From Fonticula alba ATCC 38817 (taxonomy: Eukaryota > Protista > Nucleariida), in the NCBI GenBank assembly GCA_000388065.2, contig KB932206.1: a DNA stretch of 22,466 bases; one strand, written 5' to 3'. Made by a program: the position numbers and the translations under genes. The number at the start of each line of letters is the position of its first letter. The stretch's first letter is position 1. Positions 1,728 to 11,100 of the stretch are shown piece after piece. Below the pieces are notes generated by a model. The model saw only the letters and a list, made by a program, of their open reading frames with translations. It was not told the origin of the DNA and made no database searches.

Positions 1728-2577
1728 ATGAAGATATACACCCGCCGCGGCGATTCTGGTATGTGCCCGAATTCCTGCCTCTCTCTCTCTCTCTCCCCTC
1801 CCCCCCCCCCCCCCCCCCCCCTTGTCCAATAGAATGGTCTCCGAGGCTTCTGGCTGCCGCTGCTGCCGGCCTGTGCTGCCGGCCTGTTTGTTTTTGTTTG
1901 CTGCCCGCCCCTCCCGGTCCCTCTACTCCGTGTGCTGCCACACGGGCCCACATGCATCGGTGATTGTGTGCCCACGCGTGCCAGGATATGGGGGGCATCC
2001 ACTGGGAGTCTATCGGCGTACATGCGCACATGCACACACATGCACACACATACATGTGTGTGCATGTGTGCACCTGTCAGAGCCCCATCTGACGGAGATG
2101 CGTACAAAGGTGTGTGTTGAAGTGCTGCCGGAGGTCGGCCGCGAACGACACCGCGCATGCCTTGACCGACTCCTCATCCGAGCTGCTGGCGCCTGCTTGG
2201 CCCAGCGAAGCGGCCATCAGGTCCGGCTGGAACCGGCTCAGGTGCATGGCGGTTCTGGCCAGGAGAGCGCCCAACTGCCTCTGCGAGTGGCGAACGCGCG
2301 GCTCGTTGGCCGGCGGGCCAGACCAGGCATGGCGGGCAGCAGTGTCCCGGCTGGCGGCATTGGCGGCCGTCATTGCTGGCTGTTCCAAGCGATTTCCCCG
2401 AAGGAGTCGCCTCAGATCCGCCGGCCGAAGGAGTTGCCGCATGCCGGCCGCCGGGGTGAGGAAGACCAAATGCACAAACGCCTCGAAGCCGAGCCTGTCG
2501 AGAGGGGATGGGCGCATGCGCATGCGCATGTGTGTGTGTGTGTGAGATGGGCTTGAGCTTCCCCCCCNNNNNNNNNN

Positions 2578-2625
<48 letters not shown>

Positions 2626-4483
2626 GGCCACTCACCTCGTTGCCCGTCTCCCCTGCCATGTGCAGGGACCTCGAGCCTCTACAATGGGACTCGCGTGTCC
2701 AAGTCCGACCCCGTCTTCCTGACCATGGGCCATGTTGACACGTTGAACTCCAGCATCGGGTGCGTATTGTGACGGTGCCGCTCGCGCGCACGCCGCCTGG
2801 CCTGCCACCTGCTCGACTTGCACCCTGCTGCCAGGCGCTCCTGTCCGGACTGACTCTCCTGCTTCGGGATGTGACGCAGCGTTGCGATTCAGTTCCTCAC
2901 CAGCCACAAGGACAAGAAGATGATCGCCGACCACCTGGTGTTGGTACGCCTCGCGGCCCGCCGCTGCCGCTCTCGCCGTTGCTCCTGCCGCCGCGCCTGC
3001 CCACATGCTGACCGCGCCTCCGCGCCGCACCCATAGGTCCAGAATTGGCTGTTCGACCTCGGGGCCCACATCGCCACCCCGCGGACCAGCTCCAACCCCA
3101 CAAAGATCAGTGCGTGCCGGGCTCCCGATGTGCCCCTCCTGTCCCCTCGCTGCTCACCGTCCCCGAGCCGGGCATTTTCCTGACCCCCCCCCCCCCCCCC
3201 CCCCCCCCCCCTTGCTGCCCCGGGGCACCCCCAGACGCCACCCAGTTCGACGATGATGGCATGCTGGCCACCCAGCTCGAGGAGTGGATCGACGACATCA
3301 GCGCCCGGCTTCCGCCGCTGAAGAACTTCATCCTCCCCTCCGGCGGCTACGCCTCGTCCCATCTCCACATGGCCCGGTCGTACTGCCGCATGGTCGAGCC
3401 CCACCTTGTGACGCTGGTGGTCGACCGCCAGGACTGCCATCCCTCCAGCCTGGCTTTCATCAATCGGTGCGCCCCCGTCGCGACCGGCCGGCCCTTTCGG
3501 CTGCACCCCGCGCCATCCGCTGACCGTCCTCCCTTCTCCCCCGCCCGCGCCCCCCCTCCTGGGGGTTGCCCTGCTGCTCGGGCCACAGGCTGTCGGACTA
3601 TTTGTTCGTTGCCGCGCGTCTTGCCTCGCAGGCGGATGCCGTGCCGACGGCCACCTACCAAAAGCGTCTGCTGACCGGGGCCGCGGTCCAGCGCCGGCGG
3701 ACCACCACCTCCGCCCCGGCAGGAGGTCTGCGCTTTTTGATGCTGCTCCTGCTGGCTTTCTGTGTGGCCACCTTCGTGCTGGGGGCGGTTCTCCTGACCA
3801 CGGTTTTGACGGTGGCTCCGCGGGACATGCAGGTGGATATCATCGCCGGGACCATGACGCACCCGATCTTCCTGTATCGGCTGCTGTCGCTGGCGGCCGG
3901 CGCGGCCGTGGCCAACCTCCCCCGGGTCCTCGGCCCGCTGGCTGCCATGCACCATGGTGCCATGCAGCTGGCAGGTGATCTGGTGGCTCGCGGCCCGGCC
4001 GACGCGGTGAGTCGCCTTCGTGAGCAGGCGGCCACCCTGCCGGCCCATGGGGCGGCGCTGGCCCGGTGGTCGGCGGCCGAGACGGCGGCCGTGGCGGCGC
4101 ACGCGCGCGCCACCCTCCCCAGCCTTCTGGGGTCCACCTTTGCCGAGGCCTACACCCAGTCGTACCAGCTGGCCGAGAAGGCCATCCTCCCGAGCCTGGA
4201 CTCCGGGAAGCAGTGGTCCGTCGCGACGGCGGCCCACTTCGCCCCGGCGGTGGTCGTGCGCCTGGAGCAGGCTCGCGACCAGTACCTGGCTCCGGCGCTG
4301 GCTCAGGCGGGTCGACTGGTCGGCGAGGCTGATCGCCAGGTTCCGCAGGTCCGCCGGGCCTTCATGGCGTCCGTTGACTTCCTCAACGACCGGATTGGCC
4401 ATCTGATCCAGCCTCCCGGCGGCACGGGGTCCAAGTGCGGCACGGCCAAGCCCCTGCGCCACCTGACCCCCTTCGGCAACTGA
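1728..4483 (+). CDS. MMAB: ATP:cob(I)alamin adenosyltransferase (PduO/MMAB type) with long C-terminal membrane/helical extension. Exons 1728-1758, 2666-2759, 2880-2943, 3037-3109, 3235-3466, 3589-4483
   Basis: All junctions are GT-AG and phase-compatible. Spliced product: [11 protein letters not shown]|[31 protein letters not shown]|[21 protein letters not shown]|[24 protein letters not shown]|NATQF...[34 protein letters not shown]...FINR|[10 protein letters not shown]. This matches the family motifs KIYTRTGD, Q..LFDLG, LPPL..FILP and NRLSDYLF. The 3' end is less certain because it may splice on to 4739-4900. Confidence 0.92.
2077..2494 (-). CDS. TERT: Probable terminal exon of TERT (C-terminal extension/thumb)
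   Basis: Acceptor ccctctcgacAG at 2496-2495, then G CTC GGC TTC GAG... ([12 protein letters not shown]...[15 protein letters not shown]). Its first G completes the TG|gtgcgc phase-2 end of the TERT exon at 5130, giving [12 protein letters not shown]. This resembles the human TERT CTE segment VQWLCHQAFLLKL. An internal gtacgc donor near 2105 could extend it further. Confidence 0.75.
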
Positions 4484-4500
4484 TGGCCGCCATGCCCACC

Positions 4501-4506
4501 GGTGGC

Positions 4507-4536
<30 letters not shown>
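4501..4536 (+). repeat. (GGTGGC)n hexamer microsatellite
   Basis: Five GGTGGC units followed by GGTGGT, read directly. Confidence 0.9.
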
Positions 4537-4537
<1 letters not shown>

Positions 4538-4729
4538 CCTGACGCCCGCGGGACTTGGTCCGGGGTCGATGAGTCACACGTTCCGGGCTTCCCGCATGTC
4601 CCCCCCCCCCCCCCCCCTCGGGGGACTGCCCTCGCCGGAGAGCCCGATCCAGAGCCCGGGCGCTCTGGGCTCGCCACGAGGCGTTACGACAATTGTGCGC
4701 CAAGAAGGAGGACTATTCGGGGCGGGCGA

Positions 4730-4900
4730 ATGACTAGACCGACAATTGGCGCGGAGGGCCGTCTGGTCCAGGAGGAGCGCCGCTACTTCAAGCAGCAGGA
4801 GATCACCCGGCCAGCCTCCCTGCCTCAGGATGCCGTCGTGCCGGAGGCCACCCGGTTGGCGGCCACCAACCACTATCTGGCCCCCTCTGGCTCGTCCTAA
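4730..4900 (+). CDS. 56-codon ORF or terminal exon of unknown function (MTRPTIGAEGRLVQEERRYFKQQEITRPASLPQDAVVPEATRLAATNHYLAPSGSS*)
   Basis: Strong GC3 coding-like codon usage, ending at TAA 4898-4900. An intron-like poly-C tract lies upstream (about 4590-4617). Confidence 0.45.
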   Translation: MTRPTIGAEGRLVQEERRYFKQQEITRPASLPQDAVVPEATRLAATNHYLAPSGSS

Positions 4901-5084
4901 GCTGGTGCCGNNNNNNNNNNNNNNNNNNNNNNNNNNNNNNNNNNNNNNNNNNNNNNNNNNNNNNNNNNNNNNNNNNNNNNNNNNNNNNNNNNNNNNNNNN
5001 NNNNNNNNNNNNNNNNNNNNNNNNNNNNNNNNNNNNNNNNNNNNNNNNNNNNNNNNNNNNNNNNNNNNNNNNNNNNNNNNNNNN

Positions 5085-5120
5085 TCAGCGATGGCAGTCT
5101 AGCGGTCGGGAGAAGGGGGG
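5085..5120. repeat. 36-nt sequence duplicated at 6325-6360
   Basis: tcagcgatggcagtctagcggtcgggagaagggggg occurs at both positions, each near the 5' end of a TERT intron. Confidence 0.9.
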
Positions 5121-5129
5121 CGTGCGCAC

Positions 5130-8100
5130 CAGATGACCAACGTCCGGTGGAGGCCGGCCCGGCGTGCGAGGGTCTGCTCGGCCGTCAGAGGGGAGGACGG
5201 TTCGTGGGCCGGGATTTCGCCGAGGATCTCCGAGGAAAAGACATGGAGCGCGTCGTAAATAAGTGCTGCCGGGGGCGGGCCTGTCAGTCGGAGCGTGGAG
5301 CCCCCCTTCTTCAAGGAGGGAGCAAGAGGAGCATTGGCCGAGGGAGCATCGGCCGGGGGGGGGGGGGGGGGACCAGCGCACAGGAGAGCAAAGACACCGA
5401 GGGCATGTGGAAGCCCTGGACCAGGGCCAACTCGGCCAGAAGGGACACGGCACACCGGTAGAAGCCCAGGTAGAGCATCTCAAAGAGGTTGAGCATCAGC
5501 CCGAAGGAGGGAAGCGGCGAGCTGGCAAAGGCCCCAGTGGCCAGGCAGGTGCGCTGTTGCGTGACCGCCTGCGTTGTGAACATCGGCACTATCTTGAGGC
5601 GCGGGCGGAGGAAGCGTTTGAAGAGATTCAGGAAGATTGACCGCAATGGCGGCGTCGAGCCGGCCAAACGGCGCGGCAAAGTCAGGTAGTGGCTGGCGGC
5701 TAAGGGGCGGCGGTCAGAGGGGGGAACGAGAGAGGAATTTCACCCCGTGCTGTCTCCCCGCGAAAGGAGCAGGAGCTTGGGGGGGGGGGGGGGGCAGCCG
5801 GGGGGTATTGCGGGTCCGCTTCCGAGCGTACCATTATCCGCCTGCTTGCGGTAGCTCACCCGGACGGACAAATCCGTCAAGTCCAGGCTCAGCCCGCACC
5901 ACAGGAAGGCTGAGGCAGAGGGGGAGAGGACGGCACCCAGGCAGCCGGAGATACAAGAGAGAAAGTCAGACACACAGCAGAGCAAAAGCGAGGGGGGGGG
6001 GGGGGAGGGGGCCTGTGCAGCGCGGGCCTCGTCCCAAACCAAGAAGACACACCGGTTGGCGAGCACACGGGGATGGCGGGCTGTGTCACGAAGCTCGGAC
6101 TGAAGGACATCTGCGACTTGCTCACGCTGATCTGGAGGTTGTACTTGGCAAAAACACCATCTGCCAGGCGGCGGTACAGCTCCTCGGCTTTGTTGCGGTC
6201 GGAGGTGATGAACATCACATCGTCCACATAGCACAGCAGTTGCTGCGAATGTATGCATATTTGTAGGCATGTGTGTGTGTGTGTAGCGCACGTGCGCACG
6301 GTTGCAGCATTAGGCACGCAGGCGTCAGCGATGGCAGTCTAGCGGTCGGGAGAAGGGGGGGGGGCAAGAGTACGCACGGAGTCCGAGCTGCCCAGCAGGT
6401 CGCCCAATTCCGCCTGCAGAGCATGGCCGACGTATGCGCGACAGACCAGGGTTCCGATGGTCGACCCTTGGGAAATGCCCCGCTGTTGGAGGTAGTACTT
6501 GCGATCGAACTGTCCGGCCGGTGGGACCGCAGAGAAGGACAGAAAGCCCGCCAACCGCGTATACGTACACACACACACACACATGCACACATGCGCGTGT
6601 ACACACGTATCGATGTGTCAGAAAAGCACACACACACACACACGCGCAAGTGATTGTCTGAAAAGTACGGCCCGTGGGAGGTATGTCCCACCATCGACCG
6701 TGTGGCCAAACGCACCCTGATGACATTGCGCTTGACATGGTCGGCGAGGTCCTGCAGCAGCGAGGCCTTGGTGGCCACCCAAGACCAGGATATGTCCGTG
6801 TGGATGCCCTGCTGCACGGGAAGCAGTTGCTCCGGACTGGCCGCATCCGCCGACAGGCGAGCCTGGCGCCCACGGACGCCTTGGGCATTGGTACACCGGA
6901 AGCACACGGACCCGAGGGCCTCGGAGAAGGCCCGGCCGAGAACCACATCCGCCAGGATGGGGGGCCGGTCAAGCCCCGTTGCCAGGGAGGTGCGCTTGCG
7001 GTTGAGGGACCTGCTCTGGGTCGTTCCCGACCGCTCCGGGGACAGCGTGTAGATTTTCATCAGCGAGTAGCGCTCCGACAGAAGGACCTGATCGCGGATG
7101 ATGCGGATGATCCGATCGGAGTCGAAGGAATCGTATGCGGCGCTGATGTCGAAGGAAATGGCGAACAGCCGCGGCAGTGTGCCACCCGGAGCTACCGAGC
7201 GCGCGAGGGCAGGGCCCGGCACATGAGGCCGGCACACCGGGCACACAGAGAGCAGCGAGTCAGCAGAGGGCACAGTCGGGCCGAGGGGAGTGGCGCCGGT
7301 GTGGGTACATGCATGCATGCGTTTTGCGTATGTATGTGTGTGTATGTATGTGTATGTATGTGTGCGCATGCGCATGCGTGTGTGCGTGTGTGTGTATGGC
7401 CATCGGGAATGTGCGCCTGCGCAGGTCACGTACCAGCCGTGCCCGGTGTGGAAAAGTGCTGCTTGAGTACCGGGATGAGTCGGTAGAGGTTCTGCATCCC
7501 GAGGAGGGTCCCGCGGAAGATGTCCCCCGGCACGGAGCGGCATTGTGTGCATAGCTGCCGGAGGTAGGCGGCATCGCGCGACACGAAGAACTCCGACCGC
7601 CGGCGCGACTCGTACGTCAGCACAGCAAACAGGGCTTCCAGGCGCGATCGAACGCTTTTCGCCCCATCCGACTTCACTGAGGACTTGTTGTGAGGGGGGG
7701 GGGGGAGGGGCAGCAGCCGGGACGTGTGGTCAGCACAAAAGCAGGCCCACCCAACCCACGTCCAAGGGGTCAAGCGGCAGGGAGTTCCGCAGGGGGACAG
7801 GAGGAGACCGGCGAGCAGGCCGGCACGGCGAGCATGCGAGCAGTGTCCCGCCCCCTCCCTCGGACGGACGGACGTACGGGCGAGTATTTTTGCCGGCCCA
7901 TGTTCAAGATTGGACGCAGGCCGCCATGCGAGCTGCCCGGCATTTTCTTCGGCAAAAAGCGAAGGTGCGAGAAACCGACCTTGGTGGAGGCGATAATGCT
8001 CATGGCCTGGGCCTGCGAGAGTGCGTCAGTCAAGCGAACCGCCAGCAGGCTGGGCAGGCAAGGGGGAGAAGAGGGGGGTGGGGGCGGGCGAGAGAGAGAG

Positions 8101-11100
8101 AGAGAGAGCAAAGTACAGGGAGGCAGGCAAACGGCGCGAGGCAAAGAAACCGCCAGGCAAACAAATGAACAAACAAGCAGGCCCCCGCCCCATGCCGATC
8201 CGGACCTTGGAGATGGGTGAGTAATTGCCCGAGCGGATCAGCTTCTGGAAGGCCACCCGCGAGGCGGCCGCCCAAATGTCCCGGCGGATGTATACCAGGC
8301 ACCTGCGGCCGGCCCCATTGTCCGTGATGTAGAAGGACTGCCGCAGTAGCGGCACCACGAAGAAGCCGAGCAGCCAGTGGGAAAATGCGCTCGCGGCGCC
8401 GAGAGCTCGCCGGCCCCCCTGGTCGGGGAAGGGCCCTGGCGGGGGGCGTTGTATTCCATTGGTGCCCATCGTCAGAAGTGTCCTCCAGGTGGCATTCGGC
8501 CAAAAGATGTCCCTTGTCTGGAGGGATGTCAGTCAGGAGGCGGCGGCGGCGGCGGGAGCGGCAAGCCAAAGGGGGAGTCTCCAAAAGAGGGCACGCCCCC
8601 CCCCCCCACCCTCAGGCCGCCACTTCCACGGGCAGCGGCGAGACACAGTGGCGGACCTTGAAGAGCGTCTGGAAGTCCACCTGCGTGAGGTGCTCATACC
8701 GGCGAAGGCGCACCAGCCGGATGACCACTGGGCCCGGGGATCCCAGGCAAGGGAGGGAGGCGGACAGATGCGCGCCCGTGGCACCCGGCAAAAGAGGGGA
8801 AAGGAGGAAAAAAAAAAGAAGAAGAAAGGACACCGTCAGTCACCGGTGGCCCCCATGGCCGCCACATGGTCACATCCCAGCAGAAGCAGAGGCCCCAAGG
8901 CAGCACGCACACATTCGCAGGGACAGCCAATTGCGAAAGCGCGGGTCGGCCGCCTGCTCGGGCGTGGGCGGGTTCGGCAAGCTCGGCACGCCGATCAGCT
9001 CCGGGGGCAGGGTCAAGGACAGGATGGTCAAGATGTAGCGAATGACACTGGTCGTCGGGGTGATGAACTGGGAAAAGGACTCCAGGGTCCGCTGGGCATT
9101 GCGCTCGCTGGCCGAGACGTTTGTCGCACGGGCGGTCCCGCGGAGCCTCGCCCGGGGAGAAAGAGCAGCGCTGCGCTTCTGTGTGCCATTTGCAGCGACA
9201 CGCTCGTGTGAGAAGCCGAGGGGCGGGCAAAGGGGCAGACAGAAGGAGAGGGAGAGGGAGAGAGAGAGAGACAGAGGGAGGGAGGGCCGGCGGGGCGCCA
9301 GCTGGAGGGAGGGAGGGAGGGGGGGGGGGAACAGCACGGGTGGCCACAGGGGGCGGCCGGCGAAGGCCCCGCCATGTCCGGCTTGAGGGGACGCACATCT
9401 CGCGGGCAATAGCGTGCGCGGATCCATTCCAGGGGGGGCCGACGGAAGCGATGCGGCCCGCGCATGGCCGGGAGGGCCAGCCGGCGAAAGGCGGCGCGGA
9501 ACTTCCGCAGCCCCAGCGCCAGGGCCTCCACCTGTGGGCCGGTGATGTGTGGGGGAAGTTGATTGAGGGCGGTTCGCGAGTGGCCTGCGCATGGGGGCGC
9601 CTGCCAGTCGGGCTGGAGGATGCTTCGGGCCAGCAGGCGCAAGTCCACATGCAGGCAAGTCAGCTCGTCTTCGCCAGCCGGGCCGGTGGGAAGACGCATG
9701 TGCGTGTGTGTGAGAGGGAGGGGCGAAGGGCGGGGGGAGGGGCAGACCCGCGAAGCAGGGCGCCGAGACACGGGCGGCGCAGCAAAAAACAACAAAAAAA
9801 CAAAAAAAAACCCGGCCCGGGGCACAGCCAGCGGCGCGAATTTGGCCGAAGAGCGGGGAGGAAAGGAGGAAGAGGCGGAGCAGGCGGGCCGCCGGGCGGT
9901 GGCCAGGGCGTACGGCAGAGGGGAAAAGCCCCGGAGTATTGGAACTTCTTCGGCAGCAGGGTGCCCTCCGGGGACGGGGCCCGCGAGGCAGGCCCGCGCC
10001 ATGTCCGGGGGAAGTGCCGCTCCAGGGGCGTGGAGTGGGGGAAGAGCAGCAACGGCCGCGCCTGGTAGCATGTCAAGTGGAAGGCCGCGCGATCGGTCAG
10101 GGCCGGGGCCGACGGGCCCGGGCGCGGGAGCGAGGTCTTCAGGTTGTAGAGCAAATCGGACGGGCCAATGACCAACGAGTGGGTGTCCCCCGAGGGGGAC
10201 GGGCTGACGGTGTACGACAGGCGGGGCTTCGACTTTGGCGCCGAGGGCCCGGCCGGAAGGAGGCTTTGCCGGGAGAAGGCCCGCCGGCGTTTGCGACGGC
10301 CCGCGCTGCTGGCCGCGGCTGGCTCCGCATCGGCCGGGGAGGCGGCCGATTCCGGGGCCGGGCGCGGGCGCCGCTGCCCCGGGGGAGCCTGGCTAAATCG
10401 GCGCCCGACACTGGCTCCCACATGGTGGCGACAGGGGGCGATGAGCACCTGCCGGGTGGGCCCATGCGGGACCTTGTGCTGGAAGCAGGTCCAACACACC
10501 ACATCTTTCAGGGCCACGCCTGGAAGGACAAGCGCCCGCCCCCCCCCGGTTGCCCTCGGGGAGGGGGGCCCATACGTCAGTTTGCGCGACAGAGGGCACC
10601 GGAAGCATGGCCGCCGGGGCGGGCCACACATGCACACACTGCGAGAGGCAACATACCGGACAGCTGGACATAGTGCACGGCCCGGGCCTCGGGCTCCATG
10701 GTGGGCAGCAAGTGTCGGGGATGGGTGGCAAGGTGCGCCGGGGTCGGGGTGGTCCCTGCCGAGGGGCACCGACCCCGGGAGCCCCGGTCCCCGGTGGCCT
10801 GGGGGTCCCACATGGGCGAGATAATGATGGGAGTGGCGAAGAGGAAGACCATGAACTGATCGCCAAAGCTGGGCGGGCCGCATGTCAGCATGGGGCCGAG
10901 GGGGAGGGCGCAGGCGGGACACGGTGATTGCACATACATTTGGGAGAGTCGCTTCCAATTGGACGAGTTCCGGATGTATTGGACGATGCGATTGTTGTCG
11001 GATGCCCCGGTGAAGAGGTTGAGTGTGCCCTGCGCCTGTTGTGCGGGGTAGGTGAGCCAGAGCTCGAAGCCGAGTACAGCCAAGCCCCTGGGGACGCACG

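Follow-up and report, generated by a model that had tools for sequence, protein, structure and literature searches.

Nested and interleaved genes are well described in Drosophila and mammals, where the known cases belong to genomes with long introns. A comparable arrangement is printed in the window analysed here, a stretch of 22,466 nucleotides (nt) of Fonticula alba corresponding to C6:2154049-2176514 of the assembly. As in the described cases, exons of the telomerase reverse transcriptase gene (TERT, minus strand) and of the cobalamin adenosyltransferase gene MMAB (plus strand) lie inside each other's intron on opposite strands. The F. alba locus differs in that its other introns measure 93-242 nt and in that the arrangement hangs wholly on unverified draft junctions. 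The locus was also compared with the local mis-ordering of contigs in draft scaffolds built from short reads. It shares with these cases breakpoints at homopolymers or simple repeats and at N gaps, a piece of less than 1 kb exchanged with its neighbour, genes that are restored by the swap, and contig overlaps that contradict the printed order on the same scaffold. It differs in one junction without N, for which a fused low-complexity overlap must be supposed rather than a simple scaffolding slip. In the printed sequence, exon(s) of either gene do lie within an intron of its partner; the interleaving itself is probably an error of assembly order, in which two neighbouring pieces were swapped.

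The locus was divided into four pieces. Piece A ends with the C22 run at 1821, B covers 1823-2567, Y covers 2578-4910 (2.3 kb), and Z extends from 5085 onward. The exons of TERT and MMAB were searched singly, with one exon per query, and the F. alba assembly that was searched comprises 31.3 Mb in 214 scaffolds. As printed, MMAB intron 1 measures 907 nt and the last TERT intron 2635 nt, whereas the other 11 definable introns of both genes fall in the above range. The MMAB introns are 907, 120, 93, 125 and 122 nt long in printed order, so that the initial annotation, which had given about 90-125 nt for all but the first, agrees with the measured 93-125 nt. After exchange of the swapped pieces, B and Y, MMAB intron 1 consists of 41 + 42 nt (about 83 nt) around a single C run, with AG absent throughout, and the last TERT intron of 45 + 73 nt (118 nt) plus a gap. 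The earlier suggestion that moving the segment would restore two ordinary short introns could thus be confirmed. All 12 verified introns, including the 3' ends of both disputed ones, carry CTGAC or CTCAC at 14-108 nt upstream of the acceptor, and no AG was found between this branch motif and the acceptor except for one AG abutting the motif in a single intron. Long C runs are present on the sense strand of introns in both genes.

From the observed exon joins, intron sizes, junction positions and unreliable local order, we infer the physical order at the locus. Because gene continuity asks for A next to Y and for B next to Z, the true order would be A-Y-B-Z, in place of the printed A-B-Y-Z, and TERT and MMAB would be ordinary convergent neighbours. 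The 254 nt of B situated left of the TERT stop would then form the spacer between the end of Y and the 3' end of TERT. Since the total span from A to Z is the same after the swap, gap sizes argue neither way. T-rich islands were considered as markers of 3' ends for the orientation of B and were rejected, as they also occur in sense orientation inside TERT introns.

All three junctions involved in the swap are located at weak points of the assembly, namely CT repeat plus C22, C7-N10-C46, and N174. The flanks that had been described initially for the segment at about 1821-2567 (poly-C runs and a 10-N gap) were recovered as C22, C7, N10 and C46. On its A side, B is joined through CT repeat and C22 without N, and a genome search found B to be single copy. 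A CT repeat followed by a long C run may have been common to MMAB intron 1 and to the Y-to-B junction, and the assembler may have collapsed both. It would in this way have fused A to B gaplessly and left Y between the 10-N and 174-N gaps. The coordinates of the features are collected in Table 1.

Table 1. Features of the TERT/MMAB locus of F. alba, in positions of the window
Feature	Position	Strand	Details
MMAB exon 1	1728-1758	+	ATG at 1728; ends G1758, phase 1; donor GTATGT; direct reading
MMAB intron 1, 5' part	1759-1821	+	41 nt, mostly CT repeat, then C22; proposed false join A|B
C22 run	1800-1821		run/gap listing of the window
Segment B	1823-2567		745 nt; holds TERT 3' UTR (untranslated region), last exon and 3' end of last intron; probably misplaced
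Putative last TERT coding exon	2494-2077	-	1 + 417 nt; stop 2077-2079; CAG acceptor; first base G
Last TERT intron, 3' end	2495-2567	-	CTCAC 48 nt from acceptor, AG-free tail; ends in 7 C (+ strand) at contig end
C7 run	2561-2567		end of B's contig; run/gap listing
10-N gap	2568-2577		minimum-size, between poly-C ends
C46 run	2578-2623		start of Y
MMAB intron 1, 3' part	2578-2665	+	C46 + 42 nt with CTCAC branch motif, AG-free tail, CAG
MMAB exons 2-6	2666-2759, 2880-2943, 3037-3109, 3235-3466, 3589-4483	+	
Copied fragment	4618-4707		96% identical to C2:3256635-3256722 (minus strand)
Copied fragment	4706-4772		81% identical to C1:1430418-1430484 (minus strand)
Copied fragment	4762-4910		96% identical to C80:2525-2673, VPS26 3' end: last ~46 codons + stop
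174-N gap	4911-5084		between Y and Z; proposed true place of B is between Y and 5085
Last TERT intron, 5' end	5085-5129	-	
TERT penultimate exon	5265-5130	-	ends TG before GTGCGC; direct reading
Upstream TERT exons	5382-5699, 5832-5909, 6053-6242, 6378-6509	-	introns between them 116-143 nt
TERT exon with T motif and end of RNA-binding domain	8206-8517	-	PF12009

MMAB was identified as a PduO-type cobalamin adenosyltransferase, as the Cob_adeno_trans domain (PF01923) was detected in two exons taken singly, in exon 2 with E 1.7e-5 and in exon 5 with E 5.3e-16. The annotated protein H696_04120, which is identical over exon 6, scores 156 bits with PF01923 and 122 bits with TIGR00636 (PduO N-terminal equivalog; cut-off 108). 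The in-phase splice from exon 1 to exon 2 across 907 nt, claimed by the initial annotation, was borne out by direct reading and by the start of the PF01923 match. This match opens at profile position 10, at the first residue of exon 2, so that the nine residues which follow Met in exon 1 account for the absent N-terminal positions. AG is absent throughout the 5' part of intron 1 (1759-1821). Exon 6 continues as a stop-free run (3650-4483, plus strand) into a C-terminal extension of about 270 amino acids (aa) with a hydrophobic segment, which is part of the 494-aa H696_04120 and for which no Pfam match was obtained. The F. alba protein thus resembles known MMAB/PduO-type ATP:cob(I)alamin adenosyltransferases in its PF01923 and TIGR00636 matches and differs from them by this extension.

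TERT was identified by Telomerase_RBD (PF12009), which scores 39.1 bits (cut-off 25) on 8206-8517. RVT_1 matches the exon at 6054-6242 alone with E 9.9e-5, which lies below Pfam's cut-off. The reverse-transcriptase motifs could be read directly, with QGS (B') in 6509-6378, VDD (C, with the Asp pair) in 6242-6053 and WCG (E) in 5909-5832. These two domain matches constitute the likeness to known TERT proteins; the F. alba gene differs in C-terminal exons that are too diverged for detection alone. A literature search found no paper on the telomerase of F. alba.

Past 5130 the unspliced frame stops after 10 codons, and an unspliced TERT would stop about 168 residues past motif E, without the end of the C-terminal domain. 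A continuation is offered by 2494-2077, whose first base G, as had been claimed, completes the TG left at 5130; the CAG acceptor, the match in phase and 138 open codons all uphold this join. In codon usage this frame scores 0.205 bits per codon, more than the other five, and falls in the leave-one-out range of known exons (-0.003 to 0.44). Phase, splice signals and codon usage are the grounds on which 2494-2077 is designated the putative last exon of TERT. When this exon was searched alone, no family was found in Pfam or NCBIfam and no relative in PDB sequences, in the word search or in the atlas. The full HMMER search returned the annotated 51-aa H696_04119 and low-complexity matches only. 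The C-terminal TERT exon at 5383-5697, which is certain, likewise gave no match in the Pfam and PDB searches, and because it is equally undetected, the lack of matches of the last exon carries little weight. The described likeness of the join to the C-terminal extension (thumb) of TERT was confirmed by no tool on the exon alone. What suggests it is the phase, the position and a motif, in that the residues spanning the join may resemble W-L-x-x-x-A-F near the end of vertebrate TERT and the end of the exon the terminal D-F-K-T-I-L.

Positions 5085-5120, the initial 36 nt of Z, are repeated exactly at 6325-6360, within another TERT intron; the repeat starts at a C run. It has only two copies genome-wide, and the one in Z stops precisely where the contig does. 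In the complete intron, the same stretch ends in that intron's only CTGAC branch motif. The copy at 5085-5120 could be either a young duplication of an intron segment that halted the assembler or a wrong extension after the C run. With no more than two copies genome-wide, an introner-type repeat was rejected as cause of the identity. An 18-nt match of CA repeats, which is uninformative, is all that the 3' halves of both TERT introns share.

The end of contig Y (4498-4910, plus strand) is a patchwork of copied fragments, and those listed in Table 1 make up its last 290 nt. For the last fragment, derived from VPS26, the 96% identity extends up to the very end of Y. In the source scaffold, C80, the sequence beyond the copied part runs for 44 nt into a CT-rich stretch, followed by a C12 run, six bases and TTGTCCA; past TTGTCCA, the similarity of C80 to anything in the window ends. 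Segment B starts with a C run followed directly by TTGTCCA. This motif occurred 15 times on both strands in about 375 kb sampled (4e-5 per nt), and it follows only one of 275 sampled C runs of at least 10 nt, the one at A|B. The match suggests a VPS26-derived copy that extends beyond the end of Y, spans the gap and reaches into the beginning of B. Its CT stretch and C run would thereby supply the second string needed for a collapse with MMAB intron 1. The patchwork at 4498-4910 may go back to filler DNA, to a repeat family or to an assembly chimera. The open reading frame at 4730-4900 that had been listed initially does exist as an open frame; it is made by the VPS26 copy and does not constitute a free-standing gene. 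C80 is an unplaced scaffold of 3405 nt in which the VPS26 gene (Pfam positions 29-107, 134-160 and 222-274) is split by a 1635-N gap, and it also holds the start of another gene at about 3282. A second VPS26 copy is located at C6:753554-754858.

The printed order was evaluated in a 200-kb sample of scaffold C6, which was checked for gaps, contig ends and suffix-prefix overlaps. The sample contains 48 gaps, nine of them 10-N gaps that often adjoin G or C runs, and its shortest contigs measure 585 nt. Gap sizes are widely scattered, and only the 10-N minimum stands out as a preferred value. Roughly half of all contig ends are located in G or C runs, and for 13 of 95 contig ends the last 28 nt are repeated within a few kb. 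Exact suffix-prefix overlaps between contigs were found in four cases (34-95 nt), one of which fits the printed order. This concordant overlap crosses a 10-N gap at which the contig ends overlap by 85 nt, therefore 10-N gaps can hide overlaps. The three discordant ones comprise two swaps of neighbours and one case with a 3.3-kb contig interposed. Whether these are swaps or collapsed repeats, the order as printed cannot be relied on at a scale of 1-3 kb. In the region C6:2089380-2101840, a 703-nt contig is located between two 10-N gaps, and its first and last 28-mers recur 2.85 kb upstream at a spacing of 703 nt. From the contig that starts at C6:2092949, the first 1.3 kb are found again at 2100532-2101840, so that either the region is duplicated or the contigs are redundant. 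The window itself has a G+C content of about 69% and holds 30 C or G runs of at least 12 nt within 22 kb.

A permuted gene was found at the TMEM120 locus (C4:577500-587400). Along one strand, the matched positions of PF07851 follow each other as 96-147 (31.9 bits, then a 786-N gap), 294-321 (E 0.018; the last exon, just after the 786-N gap and followed by unrelated repeats), 150-249 (148 bits) and 260-288 (E 0.009, then a donor, a C run and a 10-N gap). The piece at 294-321 was missed by the quick Pfam scan and was found on reading the frames. The split intron has its 5' half ending in a homopolymer at the 10-N gap, while its acceptor and the last exon are located about 3.8 kb upstream. Nesting cannot account for such a permutation on the same strand, and the pattern is the one proposed for TERT and MMAB, the junction without N included.

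The public gene models at the locus appear to be wrong. No long annotated F. alba protein includes exon 2494-2077 according to the full HMMER search; the public TERT model therefore appears to miss its last exon, in whose place a 51-aa orphan, H696_04119, is annotated. This protein is encoded by exons 2247-2106 and 1555-1543 (minus strand) and starts at an internal Met of the TERT exon. Its intron (2105-1556, 550 nt, acceptor at 1556) adds three terminal residues and is the sole annotated link between B and A. The last 500 nt of this intron contain no CT[GC]AC motif, and its AG-free tail is only 25 nt long. As it lacks the branch-site architecture of the organism, we take it to be a product of the gene finder that gives the A|B join no support. 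The MMAB model H696_04120 opens with what appears to be a false first exon at 2329-2455 (plus strand), antisense to the TERT exon, rather than at 1728.

Among the rival explanations, it is improbable that the printed order is real, with the last TERT exon inside a 907-nt MMAB intron 1 and MMAB exons 2-6 inside a 2.6-kb last TERT intron. Such an order could stem from a recent poly-C-mediated transposition of B, and the two genes would be transcribed through each other. It is the order that the assembly shows, with A and B contiguous without N; both disputed introns keep the CTCAC motif and the AG-free tail at their 3' ends in this layout too, the patchwork at 4498-4910 resembles filler DNA at a real rearrangement breakpoint, and the annotators drew an intron from B to A for H696_04119. 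However, the two introns would have 4 to 20 times the length of the other 11, all breakpoints fall on weak points of the assembly, and the local order on the scaffold is demonstrably unreliable, as seen from the overlaps and from TMEM120. The VPS26 link between the end of Y and the start of B would require a transposition younger than a duplication that is 96-100% identical, and the intron drawn for H696_04119 is the one without the organism's branch-site architecture. Less probable still is that 2494-2077 does not belong to TERT and represents a separate small gene (H696_04119) or a chance frame. In that case there would be nothing to interleave, and the true last TERT exon would be hidden in the 174-N gap or elsewhere. 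The searches of Pfam, NCBIfam, PDB, words, HMMER and atlas, in which the frame showed no relative or family, and its absence from any long annotated F. alba protein are in line with this possibility. It is contradicted by the exact phase of the join, which has a canonical acceptor, a branch motif and an AG-free tail, by a coding-like codon score in that frame only, and by a TERT that would otherwise stop 10 codons into the intron; the certain exon 5383-5697, moreover, is equally invisible to Pfam and PDB.

A swap of B and Y remains the probable explanation, and several points weigh against it. The A|B junction lies within a contig and is free of N, and the swap therefore presupposes a chimeric join made without a gap. 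Neither a further copy of B nor a bridging copy of any junction was found elsewhere in the genome, three exact look-ups turned up no independent DNA or RNA contigs, and the search with MMAB gave only the NCBI protein. Poly-C or poly-G runs occur every ~750 nt, so that runs flanking a 745-nt piece are little surprise alone. The TTGTCCA match was noticed after the fact, with an estimated chance probability of about one to two hundredths, and this link also fits a real, recent poly-C-mediated transposition of B; such a transposition would call for an additional recent event and impair the splicing of TERT. The region of the discordant overlaps on C6 is duplicated in part, so that some of them could represent collapsed tandem repeats, not swaps, and at TMEM120 the Pfam matches are weak for two pieces out of four (E 0.009 and 0.018). 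That the two genes are genuinely interleaved and coupled in antisense, as put forward by the initial annotation, is nevertheless not supported and is opposed by the intron sizes, the junctions at weak points and the unreliable order. The poly-C misjoin that had been named there as a strong alternative, with 1821-2567 placed beside the 4911-5084 gap, is the better-supported explanation. RNA junction reads cannot separate the two layouts, because the junctions 1758^2666 and 5130^2494 are expected under either. An RNA-seq project of F. alba (SRP022580) is listed in one paper.

If the printed order were true, a 2.6-kb intron would have to be removed from TERT mRNA; at about 15 times the local norm, it would contain the larger part of a B12-enzyme gene in antisense orientation. 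TERT and MMAB would necessarily interfere with each other's transcription. The locus would be a rare instance of mutually threaded genes in a compact genome with short introns, and telomerase expression would be tied to a metabolic gene. The likelier outcome is that errors of local order occur in the F. alba reference where poly-C and CT-rich tracts lie, and that these errors break gene models. Nested, scrambled or interleaved genes from the F. alba assembly are therefore suspect until they are checked against reads.

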